Positions 50,683-63,136 of a stretch of DNA of 64,000 nucleotides are shown in pieces. Location of the stretch: contig CBFFRP010000410.1 of assembly GCA_965644295.1 (NCBI GenBank), forward strand, positions 1 to 64,000. Reading direction: 5' to 3'. The position numbers were made by a program, and so were the translations under genes. Origin of the DNA: Paraphysomonas bandaiensis. Lineage: Eukaryota; Protista; Chrysophyceae. Positions within the stretch are counted from its first letter, which is position 1. Every line of letters begins with the position of its first letter. The notes below the pieces were generated by a model. The model saw only the letters and a program-made list of their open reading frames with translations. It searched no databases and had not been told where the DNA came from.

Positions 50683-51920
50683 CTACTCTGTAACGTTCAA
50701 ATATGCTTCAACTGCTTGTTCTATACTTTTTCTTTGGTTACGGTGATTGATATTGGGCTTTCCTCTTACATACACTAGATCTTGCTTGTATTTCTGGTTG
50801 AAAGCTTTTAACTTATCAGGACTCACTTCTTTCTTGTAGGAGTCACCTACTCTTGCAATGTAACCACCCCTGTGTTGCGTAAGACCAAGATACTCCCGGT
50901 CTGAATCTATACAGAAGTCTGAACTTTCTTTCGTCCGCCAGAACGCTTTAAGCGCATCGACAGGTGTGCCTAATACCGAATCCTCAACGATACAATAAGA
51001 ACCCTTGGTCGCAAGAGGAATACAGAGTTGCATCAGTTCGTCCCACACAGTCTTTGCCTCATGAAAGCTGAGGAAAAAGCACCACGTATTAGAAATATAC
51101 ACAGGTATATACCAAATTTATGACAATACAATACAATATACGAAGGTCGTGTTGCCAGCTCACCTGTCGAGAATAACAAGCACGCGTTCTGCAGAAGCAG
51201 ACATATTACGCGCAATTTGCAGAAATTCCATACTGTCTGAGTGCTTTTGCACAAACGTGACTCTATCTTTCCAGGGCTGTTTGTCGGTAGGTAGTTCTCC
51301 CCCAAAACGTGCTTGCCACTTGTTCAGAGGCTGGGTGTCCACCGTTAATATGCGACAATTAGGGTTGAATGCAGCCATCATAACAGCCATGTATAGAGCG
51401 CTTCCTCCAGCATTCGTTCCAGTTTCAATGATAAGATCCGGCTTAATGTCGTACAGAATCTGCCCACCGAGAGAGTTAGCAAGCAAATAATAGAAGACAT
51501 ATATACCTCTGTAATAGTCTGTAGATCGAAAGGAAATTGTCCCATACGAGTGCCCATGAACCTCTGCTTCCAGTGAAGACGATTTCTACCATCATAAAAC
51601 CGTAAAATATCAGAAAAGAGTTCATCTTTCGACTCCACTCCTGCAATACTTCTATCTACACGATTCTTCAGTTTCTCGGCAGGACATCTGTGTGCTATCA
51701 TATACTCCTCTACAGGTGCAGGTAAGTAATCTTCATATATATCTTTTGATAAGAGTTGTCTAGTGTTTGATTTAATAGGCACATAGCCGTTTATTGGAGT
51801 GTCTCTCTCATTGTTTCCTTTAAAGAGAGATATAGAAGGGAAAGACAGCTCTCCGAGATAGAGTAATAGAGTGTGGTAGAGGAGGATTGATACCACTCCC
51901 GTGATTGTGAGAGTAAGCAT
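50683..51920 (-). CDS. CmcI-family (cephalosporin hydroxylase / rhamnosyl O-methyltransferase-like) protein with N-terminal signal anchor
   Basis: FMGTRMGQFPFDL...ILYDIKPDLIIETGTNAGGSALYMA, VLVILDS.H, GSYCIVED; two short introns. Confidence 0.85.
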
Positions 51921-52475: not shown

Positions 52476-55400
52476 ATGGCCGAATCATCAGTGAAGGTGG
52501 GGGTACGCATCAGACCCCTGCTTCCAAAGGAGCGGCATCAGAACAACTCTATTACATCTTATGATGAGGCAAGCATTGAGTTTAAGAATCAAACATTTAC
52601 ATACGACTATGTGTTTGGGATGGAATTACCACAGCAGCAGCTATACCAGGACACGGCTGCTCCTATGTTGAAATCATTTCTGGATGGCTTTAACGTCACT
52701 ATTATGGCGTATGGCCAGACTGGTTCTGGAAAGACGTACACTATGGGTACTGCTGAGAATGATTCATCGGATCCCAACTCTGAGGGTCTTATTCCAAGAT
52801 TCGTTTCTGATTTATTTGACAACTTGGAGAACTTTTCTAAGGAGGAGAGACTTGAAGCCAACGTAAGGATTATTACCTTTAATGGAAATTATTAACACGC
52901 TATCTTTACATAGGTTAAAGTTTCTTTTCTTGAAATCTATGGCGAGGATGTATATGATTTACTTGGTGACTCTCGCAGTACGGAGCGACAGTCTCTCCCT
53001 GTTCGTGAAAACGACAGCGGTCTTGTTTTTGTTCAAGGTTTACAAGATGTCAAGGTTCTTTCATCGGAAGAAGCGTTATCTGTGTTGACTGCGGGTACCA
53101 AGAATAGAATTACTGCTTCTACGGCTATGAATGCCGGGTCAAGTCGCTCTCATGCGGTGTTTACGATTATTCTAGACCAGACATTTCGTTCGGCGGAGTC
53201 GGAGGATGACACAACACGCATCAGTTCCAAACTGACTTTCGTCGATTTAGCAGGCTCGGAGCGTATCAAACGCACTGGTGCCGAGGGTCAACGAATGAAA
53301 GAAGGTATTCAGATCAATTCGGGACTGTTCAACCTAGGCCAGGTTATAAACGGTCTCGCCGATGATAAGAGGATCAAGACTGGAGCTAAAGCAATGCACA
53401 TTCCTTATAGAAATTCGAAACTAACCCACTTGCTCAAGGTGTACTTTTATTCTGCGTTCATAAATTTATATGACATAGTTGTGTTGTTTATCTCAGGATG
53501 CACTTGGTGGCAACTCTCAGACGCTGTTTTTGGCCTGTGTGTCTCCGGCGGAGTGCAATGAGTCAGAAACATACTCCACTCTATCGGTATGTCTATCCAT
53601 TTCAGTTATATACCAAATTGACAGTATATTTCATGTTTTAGTATGCTCGGCAGGCTAGAAATATACAAAACAAACCAGTGCGCAATATGGACAAGCACCA
53701 ACTGGAAGTCCGCCGCCTGAAGTACGCTGTGAAGACGTGGATGACCAAGGCACTCATGCACATGTTCGGTAACAAGGGATCTGGTGGTAGCGGGCAGGGA
53801 GATGACGATGACAACCCACGTGAATCCTTCTTGCCTGATGTAGCCATCAATGACACTGCCTCGCCAAGTGATTACTCTCGTGGACCTGGCTCAGAGATTT
53901 TCATGCGCCCTGAGGTGCAGCAGTATATTTATAATGTCAACGAGGTACAGTGAAGTGCACGCGTTTTACTTGCATTTCAACTCTATTGTCGATTTCATCA
54001 AAATAATATTTCCTCGTGTATATCAATACTTGTCTCACTATATTGCAGAAAATCAATACCATCCTTCAGACTGGAGGATGCCATCCCTCGCCTCGAAAGG
54101 TCCGACTATCTATCATGCCTTCCCCACGCACTAGAGGAACGGAGGCAGGTGCAACTTTTTCACACGTCAAGAGGCGACTCCAATTTAATGATGACGAGGC
54201 CCCTGTGGGTGGAAAGCGTCTAGACAGACGCAGTCTCTCAGGTATTACAGAAGAAGACGATCATGGGGGCTTGAGTGGAATCGAGGATTTTCAATCGCCT
54301 GAAGAGACTGAAAAGCTCGTATCCAGAATGATTGAGGTGATTTACTGGTACTAAATGCAATCATTTTAACAAGCATTGATTTAGTTGGTTCACAAAGAAA
54401 AAGAGTCTGCTCAGGAACGTGATCACCCCGTCAGCGAAAGTGAAGAGGGGGATGTTCTCGACAAGGAAGCTATCGACGAAGTCGACAAGGAGATTACTGA
54501 AAAAGAGGAAATTCTCGTTAAGTTAAAGGATGCTGTGAAAGGATTTGGCGCTATGAAGCAAGAGTACGAGTCGTTGCTTCACGAAATCAATGCTTTAGAA
54601 GCTGAAAGACACGAGCTTGAGGCAGCACTGGAGAAGGCCAAAAAGCAAGAGGAGCTGCTTGTGGCGCAAAAGCAGCCAGTTAACCCTGTTGCAATGGAGC
54701 GTTTAAAGGAGCGGTTCTTGAAGGTCAAGGAAGAACTCTCGCGCATGAAGAGTGACAAAACCAAAAAGGAGTCAGCCTACAAACTTATGCAGAGAGAATC
54801 AAAACAATTAGAATCGTTACAGCGAGAACTTACTAAGCTTAAAGAAATGAAAATTTCTTTAGAAAAAGCCAGAAAAAGTCAAGTACAGCAACACAACAAG
54901 TTTAAAAAGGAACAACAGCAAAAGTTGACCATGCTCAAAAAGAGTGATGTCAAGAAGCAGCGCCAGATGAATGATTTGAAGAGTGAGCTACAGAAGAAGG
55001 TCCGCGTGCTTGGTAATAAGGACAGGGAAATTAACCGTATACAATCGAAACTTAAAGCTGCGGAAGAGCACATTACTCATCTTCTTCGCCTTGCTAACAA
55101 GTCCCGCCAGAAAACGATATCTTCTACACCTTGTAAGGCAAACAGCAACCATGAAGAAAGACAGGGAGGCTCTGGAGGGACACTAGACATGGGATTTGTT
55201 CAGTCATCGAAAAATATGCTCGACAATATGGTACAGGACCGTGTGCATCTAAAGTACATGAAATCTATGTGTGCAAAGAAAAGCCGAACCCTAAAAGATA
55301 TCAAAGAAGAACTGGCTGAGGAACTTAATGAAAAGAAATCCTTGGTTGTGAAGAGGGATAAGCTTGAAGAAGAAAGTGTAAACTGCGCGGAAACTTTTGA

Positions 55401-57975
55401 TGAAGAAAAGCGTAACGCATTGAATGATATTCTCCTGCAACTGAAGACTTGTGATTCTAGTATCGACAGACTGACGACTGATCAGAACATGCTCAATGCA
55501 GACCTTGCTGAGTTATCGAAGCAAATTGGAGAGGCTAGAGACGAATCAGACTCCACCTGGGAATCATTTGGTAAGACCGTTGTGGGAAATCTTTCTCTCT
55601 CTCAGTGTCAACACATCCTTTGGGACATGGTTATGGATAAGAGTGAAGCTCTAGATGCCCTCCGCGAGGAAAAAGAGAAACGTCACGAGGTCACTGAGGC
55701 TTTTGAGTCTGCCCAGGAAACCATATCACAATTGGAAAAGCAGCTTGAGCAGAGTCGCAAAGAGATGAAACAACGTCTTGATGACGCTGAACGTCAGCGA
55801 GTGCAGGATGTGTGGGCATTGATGAAGTCACGAGATAGCGCGACTGTTTCCGAGGCATCTAATGCATCTGCACAGAGTGTTGCCTTTACTCGAGCACAGG
55901 AGCTGGAGGTTGCACTCAATGATTATATTGCTTCAGACTCTGAAATGAAAGCAGAAATTTCCCAGCTTAAGTCTCAGAATACTGAATTGATGAAGAAACT
56001 TCAAGAGAAGCTCTTTCTAGGAAGAGTCGGTTATTCTTCAAGTAAGATGGAGGCAGATGATATGGCAAAATGCTTTAAAGATCTTGACTCTATTTGGACA
56101 AGCCTTGGAACCAATGTTGAAGATCGCGAGTCAGTTCTTAATACTATTGAGAAGGCCAGTGGCCAGGCTCGAAAGGAGGCACTCGCTGCTGCCAAACAGT
56201 CTTTGGAATCCGCACAATCGGAAGTGTCCGAGCTGTTATCCAATTTGAAAATGATATGTGGCCTTCTTCATACTGCAGGAGATAAGTACTTTGACGAAGG
56301 AAAGTATAGTGAATGTTCTCTTCAGGACAAACTTGTGAATTTAAGAAAAGGGTACGCTGATGCAACTCGAGATTTCCAACAGTGCTGTATGTCAGCATAC
56401 GCATTGAAGGATAAGTTAAGCGCTTTGATTACTGATATGGGCCTTCAGGCATCAGACATGTCTGTAGATCTTAACCTTCTAAGTATTCTCGATAGTTCGC
56501 ATGCAAAGGACTGCCCCTCTGACCTCGCGTCGTATATGATCGCTACAGGAATAAACTTGAGTGCAAGCCATTTATCTCATCTAGAGTCTGCTATTCGTGA
56601 TCTATCTGTAAAACGTGCCGATACTATATCACAGACTGTGGAGATGGTGCAGCAGATAACGACTCTGCGACATGTACTGGGACTAACAACTGCATCTGCA
56701 TTACAAGAGGTTGATCTTGGGCAGGATTGTGATTCGATGGTTAAGCAGCTTGCCATTGATATTGTTCTTTCGCCTTCAGCAAATATCACAGGAAATGTCA
56801 AAGTTGTAAATGTGCTGGAAACGCTTTCGCTCAGCCTCATGACAATGAAGTCTATGAGACAGAGCTGTGCTGAGAACATAGATCAATTGGCTGCTACGGT
56901 CAATCGACTCTTTGGTGTATCACTTCTTGGTAACCTAGATGATAGCGGCAAGACTGATATTAGCAGAGAATGCCTATCCGCTGCCGCGGAGTGTATGTGT
57001 CAGTACTCAGACTGCATTGCTAATCACTTGAGAGACATTCAGCGGTCATCGTTTCTGCGAGCAACTGAAACAGGGGTACAGGGAGAAGAGTATAATTCTC
57101 ATCTTGCAGCACTATCAGATATGCCCGCCAAGACGCAGGAAGAGCTTACTATGCTAGCAGATATTGAAGCGCCCATAACCCAGTTTGAGGAAAATATTAT
57201 GTTTATTGATGAGAAGTGGCTGCATACTGCAGTGTGCTCTGTCGTCGATACTTTTAAACAAAGTAACAACGACACAATATTTGTAAGTTGCAAACTTTAC
57301 TCTCCAGTTGTCTCTAAAAGCGCATTCTATTTCAGGCTATTGTTTTGTCTACCGAAAAACGCCGCGTTGACACGTTTGCCAATGCTGTGCGAGACATGGA
57401 GAAGCAAGACAGTTTGCTAGAAAAGCATATCACAGATATGGAAGCCTTTGAAACAACATCAAAGCAAAACCGCCAAAAAGTACTGATGGGTGAGTTTTTT
57501 GGTATAAAGTTGTTTGTTTGATGTTTGTGTAGGTAATTCTAAGGCTTTAATGGACGAGGAAAAGTTTAGGAAAAGTGGAAAGCGTAAATTTGAATCTATA
57601 TGTGACAAATTGTTGGATGCTGCTCGCACCGCACAAGCTCATTCCGGAGGTATTCCACTGGACATATCCAAGCTTACACCACAGAGTCAAGGTCTTCTGA
57701 AAGGAAAAATTCAGGAACGAACCGAGCTTATGCACTTGCATACAATGACTCATGGTGCTAGGAGATGGAGCGGAGAAAGAGACAGCATGCCAACCGAGGA
57801 TTTAAACAAAGAAAATTCAGTTGGAAGTCTTAATACTGAACAAACCTCATCAAGATCAAAGTCACCTACGCCTTCTCGGATTGCAAGATGTGGCCCTCAA
57901 TCTCCAAGATGCAGAACTGCCAAGAAAGATATTTCTAAGCATTCGGTAACTTCAATATCTTCAGCTGCAAAATAA
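52476..57975 (+). CDS. Kinesin-4 (KIF4/KIF21-like) with C-terminal PRC1/MAP65/Ase1-like region
   Basis: P-loop AYGQTGSGKTYTM, switch I NAGSSRSH, switch II DLAGSER, HIPYRNSKLT. Kinesin-4-like stalk LKKSDVKKQRQMNDL...KVRVLGNKDRE. The C-terminal MAP65-like motifs are described in the findings. Confidence 0.9.
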
Positions 57976-58849: not shown

Positions 58850-59822
58850 TTAAATAACTCCAGCCTCATTCTTAAGTTTGTTGACAAGCTCGTCAACTGT
58901 CTCAACCACTACGCCAGCCTTTCTCACGGGAGGATCCTCAACGGAGACAACAGTGTTCTTAAGATCCATATCAATGCCCAAGGATGACGCCTCCACTGTG
59001 TTGATAGGTTTCTTCTTTGCCTTCATAAAATGGAAGAATCAGAGTACACACGGCGTTACAAAAATGATGTACCTTCATGATATTGGGAAGGGTAGCATAG
59101 CGAGGCTCGTTCAAACGAAGATCGGCTGTGACAACTGAAGGTAATTTAAGAGAAAGCTTTTCCGTGCCACTGTCGGTTTCTCTGTCCAGAATTAGTTTCT
59201 GTAGATAGCGTCAGCACTTTCCGCACACATAAATACACACTACAGCTCACCTCGCCATCGATCTCCATACCACAAGCGAATGTTCCTTGGGACCACCCAA
59301 GGAGTCCTGCTACCATGGGACCAGTCTGAGCATTGTCACCGTCAATGGCTTGCTTTCCAACAATAACCATGTTAGCTTCCTCGCTTTTGGCGAAGTGGGA
59401 GATGATATTCGCCACAGCTAAGGGAGAAATACCCTGATCTGTTCTCACATCAGTGGTAACATGAATACCCTTATCTGCACCCATCGCAAGAGCTGTACGG
59501 AGGGTCTCAACACATGCTTTTGGCCCAATAGATATAGCAACCACCTATAACAACAATACTCTAAGTACTACCCACCAATCAAACCTCATTACATGTACCT
59601 CATTGGCAATCTTCTTTTCCTTTAAACGAATTGCTTGTTCCACAGCAATCTCACAGAAAGGATTCATAGACATCTTCACATTAGCCAAATCCACACCTGA
59701 ACATGAGCTCAGCTCATACATACACTCCAGTAGATGGATATCTCCTCACCTGTCTTGTCGGGAAGGACACGGACCTTTACCGCATAGTCTACGGCTCTTT
59801 TTACTCCAACAAGAACTCTCAT
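58850..59822 (-). CDS. ETFB: Electron transfer flavoprotein beta subunit
   Basis: [77 protein letters not shown]. Confidence 0.95.
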
Positions 59823-60369: not shown

Positions 60370-63136
60370 TTCTTGTCACTGACTTTATAATTTACTTTTC
60401 TTAAAGAGCACATACGGTTTGTTAGTGTTTCTGGCAGTGCGCCCGTCGTTGCGCCTGGACAGTATCGCAGCCCGCTGGCGGATACTTTTTGGTGGTTGTA
60501 GAGTCTAGACAAGAGATCATCTTTTCTTGGTCCACACAGAGTTGAGTCACGGTTGGTGAGTCACCTGCGGGCACAGAAAAGATACAGTAATATTACTTAG
60601 CTTAGCAGTAAATTGTACCAAGTTAACATATATTGAGCCCAAGAGATAAGTGAGTTTAGTTTTTCGTGTGATTGAGCCATGGAACCATGTGTATCAGGAT
60701 ATGGCCAACATGTTCAGTCAGCAATTCCAGCAGCTTCGGGAGGACATGCATCAGCTTAATCAGCAACAACTAAGGCAGGAGGAGAATTTCAATGAGTTTT
60801 GAGTGGAAGTTAATAATCAACGTCTAACAACAGTTGAAGAGATAAGATCTCGGAGGACTTCACCAGCAGCTTCAGTTGTAGGTCTATATGAAGTGGTACC
60901 TCGTGAGGAGGACATATCGAATATAATTCATAATGAAGATGCGTCAACTACTTCTAGAGGCATTGAAGTTACTGTAGGACCTATATTCCTCATCATCATA
61001 CAGAGCAGTACATTGATCCAGCGCTATTGCAGTCACAAATTGAGACAGCTATTCGACAGGGAGTTCGAAATGCTACTCAGAGTATTTTGGAGGAGAGCAG
61101 TATATAGTGCAACCCCGTCAGGATAAGAGGCAAACGCTACAAACGGTACAGGAAGCGGTTGCTGAATCAGAGAAGAGGCAAGTCAAGAAGATTATGTTGA
61201 CAACCGAGGACAAGTCATATAAGAGAACGATTTCGCTTCCGGAGATCGATATGGATAAGTTTATGCAGTTTCTTGAGGATATAGCTGAGTTTGGAAAGTG
61301 CAATTATGATCAACCAATTCCTTCAGTATTCATATTGATCAAGGGTCGAGCCAAAGAGACTGTGAAGCATACTTTAATGGGGTTATTTCCTCATGTGTAT
61401 CCAACTACTTTGAGTTGTAATGATGCTTCGATAACTGATATAATGTCTGCAGTAAAGCATCATATCAGGCCACTGGATGTAGTCGCATTTAATGATATGT
61501 TGTTAAAATCTTGCACTGCGTACCAAGTGAACATGGATAAGTTGGAGGATTTTAAGAGAGTTGATGAGGAGTTATGCATTCTTGAAACAAAGTTTACACA
61601 GCGTTACGAATTCTTGGTTGATGCGTGCAAAAACAATGATTTGTGTGAAAGTATTCCTTCGTTTAAACTGCTGGTTCTTCTCATCCAACTCTCTCGTAAT
61701 CTTCAAGTGACCAAAGAACACAGTAAGAAATGCTTGTACAGAGGCAAAATTCTCTACTTTCAGAAGTCTCTTCATAGTATCCTTCATGCTCAATGGAATC
61801 AACCTCATAAAAGTCTCCAGAGAACCCCCATTCTTAATTGTTACTAATGGAATACTTTCATACAAATCATTATTTTTGCACGCATCAACCAAGAATTCGT
61901 AACGCTGTGTAAACTTTGTTTCAAGAATGCATAACTCCTCATCAACTCTCTTAAAATCCTCCAACTTATCCATGTTCACTTGGTACGCAGTGCAAGATTT
62001 TAACAACATATCATTAAATGCGACTACATCCAGTGGCCTGATATGATGCTTTACTGCAGACATTATATCAGTTATCGAAGCATCATTACAACTCAAAGTA
62101 GTTGGATACACATGAGGAAATAACCCCATTAAAGTATGCTTCACAGTCTCTTTGGCTCGACCCTTGATCAATATGAATACTGAAGGAATTGGTTGATCAT
62201 AATTGCACTTTCCAAACTCAGCTATATCCTCAAGAAACTGCATAAACTTATCCAAATCGATCTCCGGAAGCGAAATCGTTCTCTTATATGACTTGTCCTC
62301 GGTTGTCAACATAATCTTCTTGACTTGCCTCTTCTCTGATTCAGCAACCGCTTCCTGTACCGTTTGTAGCGTTTGCCTCTTATCCTGACGGGGTTGCACT
62401 ATATACTGCTCTCCTCCAAAATACTCTGAGTAGCATTTCGAACTCCCTGTCGAATAGCTGTCTCAATTTGTGACTGCAATAGCGCTGGATCAATGTACTG
62501 CTCTGTATGATGATGAGGAATATAGGTCCTACAGTAACTTCAATGCCTCTAGAAGTAGTTGACGCATCTTCATTATGAATTATATTCGATATGTCCTCCT
62601 CACGAGGTACCACTTCATATAGACCTACAACTGAAGCTGCTGGTGAAGTCCTCCGAGATCTTATCTCTTCAACTGTTGTTAGACGTTGATTATTAACTTC
62701 CACTCAAAACTCATTGAAATTCTCCTCCTGCCTTAGTTGTTGCTGATTAAGCTGATGCATGTCCTCCCGAAGCTGCTGGAATTGCTGACTGAACATGTTG
62801 GCCATATCCTGATACACATGGTTCCATGGCTCAATCACACGAAAAACTAAACTCACTTATCTCTTGGGCTCAATATATGTTAACTTGGTACAATTTACTG
62901 CTAAGCTAAGTAATATTACTGTATCTTTTCTGTGCCCGCAGGTGACTCACCAACCGTGACTCAACTCTGTGTGGACCAAGAAAAGATGATCTCTTGTCTA
63001 GACTCTACAACCACCAAAAAGTATCCGCCAGCGGGCTGCGATACTGTCCAGGCGCAACGACGGGCGCACTGCCAGAAACACTAACAAACCGTATGTGCTC
63101 TTTAAGAAAAGTAAATTATAAAGTCAGTGACAAGAA
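60370..63136. repeat. Large palindrome: 1288-bp arms (60370-61657, 61849-63136), 191-bp spacer
   Basis: Mirror ORFs 60803+/62703- and 61107+/62399-; the arms are near-identical, with three substitutions noticed. Confidence 0.97.

Follow-up and report, generated by a model that had tools for sequence, protein, structure and literature searches.

We analysed a window of 64,000 nucleotides (nt) of DNA from the chrysophyte Paraphysomonas bandaiensis (GCA_965644295.1, contig CBFFRP010000410.1, positions 1 to 64,000, forward strand). Near its end, at 52476-57975 on the plus strand, lies a gene of eight exons whose product of 1695 amino acids (aa) joins a kinesin-4 motor and stalk to a homologue of the microtubule cross-linkers PRC1, MAP65 and Ase1. 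An earlier sequence-only reading of this DNA had proposed such a fusion in a single polypeptide with the expected MAP65 domain order in its second half, and that is the order that we find: dimerisation hairpin, rod, motif-bearing helical domain and basic tail. We hold it to be almost certain that the fusion and its PRC1/MAP65 homology are real. Both halves belong to known families and their partnership is known; what is new is the architecture of a known module. PRC1 and a kinesin-4 together form the minimal reconstituted module that sets the length of antiparallel microtubule overlaps, and the size of the overlap depends on protein concentration and recruitment (PMC6200392, PMC10316633).

Gene structure and transcript

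The kinesin-4 half and the PRC1/MAP65 half are encoded as one gene, one transcript and one open reading frame (ORF). Splice sites and frames place the gene between an ATG at 52476 and a TAA at 57975, with exons at 52476-52862, 52914-53438, 53497-53586, 53642-53944, 54049-54336, 54385-57282, 57336-57489 and 57533-57975, between which lie seven GT-AG introns, each 43-104 nt long. RNA contigs from runs X1 and X2 show a joint at every one of these introns; the two runs were typed as RNA by automated guess, and their contigs are spliced. The last two joints recur in the poly(A) metatranscriptome X5. A single 5299-nt contig (run X2) spans all eight exons, an assembled contig by itself being no proof of one molecule. 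In a DNA contig from run X13 the stretch is unspliced and forms one continuous piece. The junction between the two halves lies inside exon 6 (2898 nt, 966 codons, ending at 57282), where there is neither an intron nor a stop.

The window was searched exon by exon, and whole-protein searches were made with the database proteins found. Translated one by one, the exons contain no stop and together cover the database protein P0002 (1695 aa), from which they differ by one substitution; the whole chain is also present in P0001 (1632 aa, an MMETSP transcript). The fusion transcript was recovered from bulk cultures and from field metatranscriptomes, although contigs cannot rank expression. Two separate genes and a generic coiled coil were the outcomes that the sequence-only reading had set against its own proposal; we find instead one transcript and matches to PRC1.

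Some details of that reading have shifted. Its coordinates ran from 54385 to 57975; the end holds, but the gene starts upstream at the ATG at 52476, and a full kinesin motor is encoded in exons 1-4. Its uninterrupted ORF of 1011 codons is indeed there, at 54385-57420, but the exon accounts for 966 of those codons and the rest reads through the intron at 57283-57335 and beyond. The helix starting with CFKDL begins at 56071, as it had said, and the FE..S...R / G-NSKAL..EEKFRK motif that it had recognised is present. It had placed the whole motif after two introns; the MEAFE...VLMG half follows one, and the NSKAL half follows the second (57490-57532), which splits Gly1549. This second intron seems common to many homologues, as many database fragments start or stop at the glycine; locus L057 has an intron at this position and six other loci are without one.

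The two halves of the protein

By its sequence the N-terminal half is a kinesin-4, an assignment made from a similarity ranking and the stalk domain rather than from a tree with named reference kinesins. The motor domain (aa 1-345; 52476-53674, exons 1-3 and the start of exon 4) matches Pfam Kinesin at E 2e-102. Its P-loop, switch I and switch II are intact, and the motor motifs tested are intact in six cases out of six. The closest motors in the PDB are KIF4 (E 4.8e-82) and then KIF7 (7e-76), with other named families starting from 1e-66. A spacer between neck and stalk (aa 346-531; 53675-54336) is poorly conserved and variable in the alignment, has no significant match to a Pfam family, and carries a cyclin-dependent kinase (CDK) consensus site, SPRK, at aa 449. 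It is followed by a helical stalk of kinesin-4 type, probably a coiled coil (aa 532-1075; 54385-56016), in which the KIF21A_4th domain (PF25764) is matched at 54397-54945 (E 2.9e-9, 36-37 bits against a cut-off of 33.1) and shows 47-72% identity among homologues. The fusion thus resembles the kinesin-4 family (KIF4, KIF7, KIF21; PF00225 and PF25764) in having an N-terminal motor, nearest to KIF4 and KIF7 among solved structures, and the KIF21A_4th stalk. Cysteine-rich or WD40 tails are typical of kinesin-4 members; the fusion differs in ending in a MAP65-like module, and a Pfam search found no cysteine-rich or WD40 tail.

The C-terminal half is a diverged PRC1/MAP65/Ase1 homologue over its length. 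A junction of variable length (56017-56046, within exon 6) leads into it, the distance from a stalk landmark to the dimerisation tryptophan being 59-90 aa among homologues. The PRC1-type dimerisation hairpin (aa 1086-1159; 56047-56268) matches Pfam MAP65_ASE1 at E 1.8e-4 and 4L3I by profile, and is modelled as helices at residues 2-21 and 25-75. W1102, which corresponds to PRC1 W26, and G1106 are invariant, and R1112 is kept in 30/32. The helical rod (aa 1160-1491; 56269-57264) is supported by hhalign and by the full-length matches to PRC1 in Foldseek and VIA. Beyond the rod come a putative spectrin-type microtubule-binding domain (aa 1492-1622; 57265-57753, across two introns), considered below, and a basic Ser/Thr/Pro-rich tail (aa 1626-1695 and the stop codon; 57763-57975) that is probably disordered, to judge by its composition. 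The sequence-only reading had already noted this tail: its net charge is +6 overall and +9 in the last 40 aa, of which 40% are Ser, Thr or Pro, and a CDK consensus site, TPSR, stands at aa 1661. Tails are net positive and rich in these residues in 16 of 17 family members, without sequence conservation.

Single-sequence searches of the C-terminal half are too weak, so family profiles were needed. One sequence alone matches Pfam MAP65_ASE1, a check proposed in the sequence-only reading, at E 1e-4 to 3e-4 over the first 230 residues of the half; in the PDB it finds no match, and pairwise BLAST against the stand-alone MAP65 is not significant (E 0.23). Across the family the Pfam model is matched at E <= 0.01 by 9 of 39 members (best 2.7e-6). 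A profile of the 39 sequences, run against 177,635 PDB sequences, places human PRC1 first at E 2.7e-4, with the next match at 0.34. In hhalign the family profile aligns with a profile of stand-alone MAP65s over 411 columns (92.4%) at E 5e-7, and a search of the organism's own genome with the fused-half profile matches only the fusion gene and the stand-alone MAP65 (E 2.1e-6). An N-terminal profile gives 65 stand-alone MAP65s scores of at least 15 bits and up to 34, while reversed MAP65s and the family's own stalks, used as controls, all stay under 10 bits.

Predicted structure agrees with the profiles. The AlphaFold model of the C-terminal half, made as a single chain, has a predicted local distance difference test score of 90. 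With this model, the top four Foldseek matches are PRC1 (about 540 columns, E 3.6e-5 to 1e-3; next unrelated match 0.13). VIA also ranks PRC1 first, with Z 13.1 over 408 residues and a root-mean-square deviation (rmsd) of 13.5 A, the next match having Z 8.5. A high rmsd is expected because the rods are long and hinged, and it limits what can be read in fine detail. In the Atlas, MAP65 clusters come first both by features and by shape. The homology that the sequence-only reading had proposed is firm as regards the dimerisation hairpin and the fold as a whole, but the spectrin-type domain alone did not retrieve PRC1.

That domain, delimited by conservation, models and a language-model match, is likely a homologue of the PRC1 binding domain, judging from its position and motif. 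Residues 1520-1622 are the best-conserved part of the C-terminal half, full-length homologues being 33-54% identical there and 12-26% identical across the central part of the rod. R1543, G1549, E1557 and R1561 are invariant in the family. Aligned by eye, R1543, E1557, E1558, K1559 and R1561 fall on PRC1 R377, E388, E389, K390 and R392 and are 90-100% conserved; the hhalign profile alignment uses a different register at this end of the domain. In PRC1, K390 and K387 are microtubule contacts (PMC6683753). The position equivalent to K387 is acidic both in the fusion and in the profile of stand-alone MAP65s. By language-model features, the piece falls with MAP65 clusters at 0.90. In the models a long helix is followed by a short loop helix and another long helix, after which come only two short ones. 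The homology of this domain draws on the register of the motif, collinearity, the language-model match and one weak Pfam match.

Distribution and origin of the fusion

An exhaustive homologue search gave 76 clusters at 50% identity. The family was found through its conserved C-terminal region and this exhaustive search, as a word-based search with exon 6 retrieved only the gene's own transcript. The dimerisation helix is covered in 31 clusters, 24 of which also have the kinesin-4 stalk, and in 20 of the 31 the stalk, hairpin and C-terminal domain occur together. This survey, of the kind that the sequence-only reading had suggested, shows the architecture in at least 24 clusters. Nine proteins, some of them near-copies, run from motor to tail in one record, and in relatives a single ORF spans the complete fusion at three loci, of which two have other genes next to them on their contigs. 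Most matches are metagenome contigs; the only named host of the fusion is Mallomonas annulata, and Dinobryon has yielded a stand-alone MAP65 homologue.

Seven matches without a stalk were considered as possible fissions of the fused gene. Three were checked and proved to be split gene calls or to lie at a contig end, each having stalk or motor sequence immediately upstream in the same orientation; a fourth falls into one cluster with a full fusion of 1630 aa, the check covering these four of the seven.

In a tree with the genome's other kinesins, the motors of the fusions group together (100/100), consistent with a single origin. In this tree the motor of P0005 is mis-predicted and forms a long branch, and the kinesin-4 on contig C89 was excluded, its exon segment being too short. 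The P. bandaiensis genome keeps a conventional stand-alone MAP65 (C408, E 5e-35) and two further kinesin-4-like genes that have no MAP65 half (C89 and C242), so the fusion is an addition built from duplicates and not a replacement. The best explanation is an ancient gene fusion of single origin in the chrysophyte lineage, in which a duplicate PRC1/MAP65/Ase1 gene would have come to replace the original C-terminal tail of a kinesin-4.

The kinesin repertoire of this genome is large, with 159 exon-level matches and near-identical pairs such as L013/L014 and L025/L028. The unfused kinesin-4 on C89 (L049:1800-5408, minus strand) has the motif N/D-[IV]-F-x-R-L three times in its disordered tail, in two cases followed by NPS-x-FTG; these are possibly repeated microtubule- or partner-binding motifs. 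Matches to PF03999 on contig C394 were rejected as MAP65, since they fall on a repetitive coiled-coil protein and on the opposite strand. That protein (L003:664-3353) has many near-perfect tandem repeats of about 40 aa, and its neighbour on this contig, in the same orientation, is a kinesin motor.

Possible mechanism, rival readings and neighbouring features

In the human complex, the KIF4A C-terminus binds the N-terminal dimerisation and rod region of PRC1 (PMC6200392), and a bipartite aromatic motif of KIF4A docks on PRC1 I25, W26, M54, E57 and E58 (PMC10620760). The fusion joins the C-terminus of a kinesin to the N-terminus of a PRC1 homologue, the ends through which human KIF4A and PRC1 bind each other. 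No aromatic doublet is found in the last 400 residues before its hairpin. Counted ungapped from the invariant tryptophan, the E58 position is glutamate in 73 of 73 stand-alone MAP65s and in none of 32 aligned fused copies, which carry small or hydrophobic residues there (A1134 in this gene, 56191-56193). The loss fits a docking site that is no longer needed once the partners are covalently linked. The C-terminal half is thus a homologous module and not an ordinary MAP65 family member, being fused to a motor and having lost the E58 docking position. Like human PRC1-KIF4A, Xenopus PRC1-Xklp1 and moss MAP65-Kin4-Ia, the fusion couples a kinesin-4 motor and stalk to a cross-linker of the PRC1 family (PMC6200392, PMC10620760, PMC10316633), the two meeting where the kinesin ends and the N-terminal dimerisation region of PRC1 lies. 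Unlike the human pair, in which the link is a bipartite aromatic motif of micromolar affinity on a separate protein with proposed phospho-regulation, the fusion is covalent and 1:1, has no kinesin tail and has its E58 docking residue replaced.

We consider it rather probable, by analogy with PRC1-KIF4A, that the protein works as a single-chain motor and cross-linker for antiparallel overlaps. PRC1 dimerises through hairpins that meet at a two-fold axis, and the resulting rod is 32 nm long (PMC9355583). Since a stalk dimer with parallel chains can run straight into such hairpins, we picture the protein as a homodimer in the shape of a T, with a pair of motor heads and a pair of ends that bind passively. 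Two heads directed to the plus end would lead to a long stalk, of at most about 80 nm with coiled coil throughout its 550 residues, and then to a hinge and a PRC1 four-helix bundle. Out of this bundle two rods would extend away from each other, with a passive microtubule-binding domain and then a basic tail at the far end of each. Such a cross-bar would bridge antiparallel microtubules while the heads carry it to their plus ends. Ends would be tagged, overlaps would slide until the tags collide, and plus-end growth would be damped. The PRC1-KIF4A overlap-length module would then reside in one chain with a fixed stoichiometry of 1:1. The site of action would most likely be the overlap of the anaphase spindle. 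In the chrysophyte Ochromonas danica the interdigitated overlap is not shortened as the spindle elongates (PMC2110780), and an overlap of this type is a plausible place for the protein to act.

Motors that cross-link with their own tails are known. Kinesin-5 is a bipolar tetramer, and the tail of the kinesin-14 HSET/Ncd is disordered and basic. The fusion, like these, has a motor and a second microtubule-binding site, putative in its case, in one polypeptide; unlike them, it would use a structured cross-bar of PRC1 type, and its origin is unrelated.

Several findings weigh against this picture. The fused half keeps the PRC1/MAP65/Ase1 order (PF03999; 4L3I, 4L6Y) of hairpin with invariant Trp and Gly, rod, motif and tail, and it has the FE..S...R / L..EEK.R motif on a long helix-loop-helix and a basic Ser/Thr/Pro tail, but it is not free-standing, and its Pfam score of 20-21.6 bits lies under the curated cut-off of 26.9. 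Its rod is about 70-90 aa longer than in PRC1 or stand-alone MAP65, and the superposition of the whole half on PRC1 is loose (template modelling score 0.38-0.47, rmsd 13-16 A). In place of PRC1's long third spectrin helix the fusion has a short, broken one, which ends in a new, family-specific conserved motif, ELMHLHT. Searched alone, the binding domain does not retrieve PRC1 by profile hidden Markov model, Foldseek or VIA and gives only generic helical-hairpin matches, and Pfam MAP65 is matched there in only 1 of 52 members (E 0.0011). The loss of E58 is probably one inherited event and not 32 independent ones. Finally, the retained MAP65 and unfused kinesin-4s could do the midzone job.

An alternative is a real fusion in which the MAP65 half has taken on another job and lacks PRC1's selectivity for antiparallel microtubules: it might bind microtubules as a non-selective second tail, offer a site for cargo or an adaptor, or fold back for auto-inhibition. 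The altered third helix with its own motif, the unmatched binding domain, the diverged and longer rod and the normal MAP65 still in the genome all point this way. We regard it as unlikely all the same, because the dimerisation hairpin never varies at its Trp and Gly and seldom at its Arg, Foldseek and VIA still recover the full-length fold, and the positions aligned by eye to the PRC1 motif are highly conserved. The same biochemistry might also serve mainly outside mitosis, in interphase arrays such as flagellar roots or cell-shape and feeding microtubules. Moss employs MAP65 and a kinesin-4 on interphase overlaps (PMC10316633), a stand-alone MAP65 and two unfused kinesin-4 genes are available for mitosis, and the transcript comes from bulk cultures and field samples; against these stand the midzone as the canonical place of the PRC1 and kinesin-4 pair and, as a weak sign, the CDK consensus sites in spacer and tail. 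We find this quite unlikely.

The chain has a parallel dimerisation module and, independent of it, an antiparallel one, with a linker of variable length between them, and these modules could pair with different partners. Bipolar tetramers or chains, or a fused hairpin paired with stand-alone MAP65, would make a kinesin-5-like slider or a network former. This is improbable, as a simple homodimer with hairpins meeting at a two-fold axis satisfies both modules (PMC9355583, PMC10620760), and fused and stand-alone hairpins are only about 24% identical. An artefact, whether two neighbouring genes, a mis-assembly or a chance coiled-coil likeness to MAP65, would account for the weak single-sequence scores, but it is barely credible and effectively refuted: the junction lies inside a 2898-nt exon covered by one RNA contig and an independent DNA contig, single-ORF orthologues exist, and PRC1/MAP65 comes first in profile, structure and language-model searches with negative controls.

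The fuller form of the single-chain proposal is an undescribed, lineage-wide chrysophyte midzone organiser, a dimer of two kinesin-4 heads and an antiparallel cross-bar of PRC1 type, that would unaided recognise, slide, end-tag and set the length of antiparallel overlaps. We put it forward tentatively, with a probability a little below even. No mention of a kinesin-MAP65 fusion was found in the literature, including the kinesin surveys PMC2867816 (with supplements) and PMC1434745, subscription papers lying mostly outside the search. Pfam annotates the fusion proteins only as kinesins, which hides the architecture in databases. Animals and plants make the two cell-division partners separately, and the fusion is a natural test of why they are usually kept apart. 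A covalent and conserved version fixes the stoichiometry and removes the docking step, so that one purified protein could test the need for tunable recruitment; if the midzone-organiser proposal is true, overlap length can be controlled without recruiting the motor in a separate, regulated step. The fusion further suggests that the animal and plant partnership existed in stramenopiles, and it offers a molecular candidate for the persistent spindle overlap of Ochromonas (PMC2110780).

Other features of the window surround the gene. Upstream, a divergent gene on the minus strand (50683-51486) encodes a rhamnosyl O-methyltransferase/CmcI domain (PF04989) split over exons. Near the end of the window there is a perfect inverted repeat of 1288 nt (60370-61657 and 61849-63136) with a 191-nt spacer, which duplicates on both strands an ORF without a Pfam match; it may have arisen by a recent palindromic duplication or as a fold-back artefact of the assembly. 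Between this repeat and the fusion gene lies a convergent gene on the minus strand (59146-59544) with an ordinary electron transfer flavoprotein domain.

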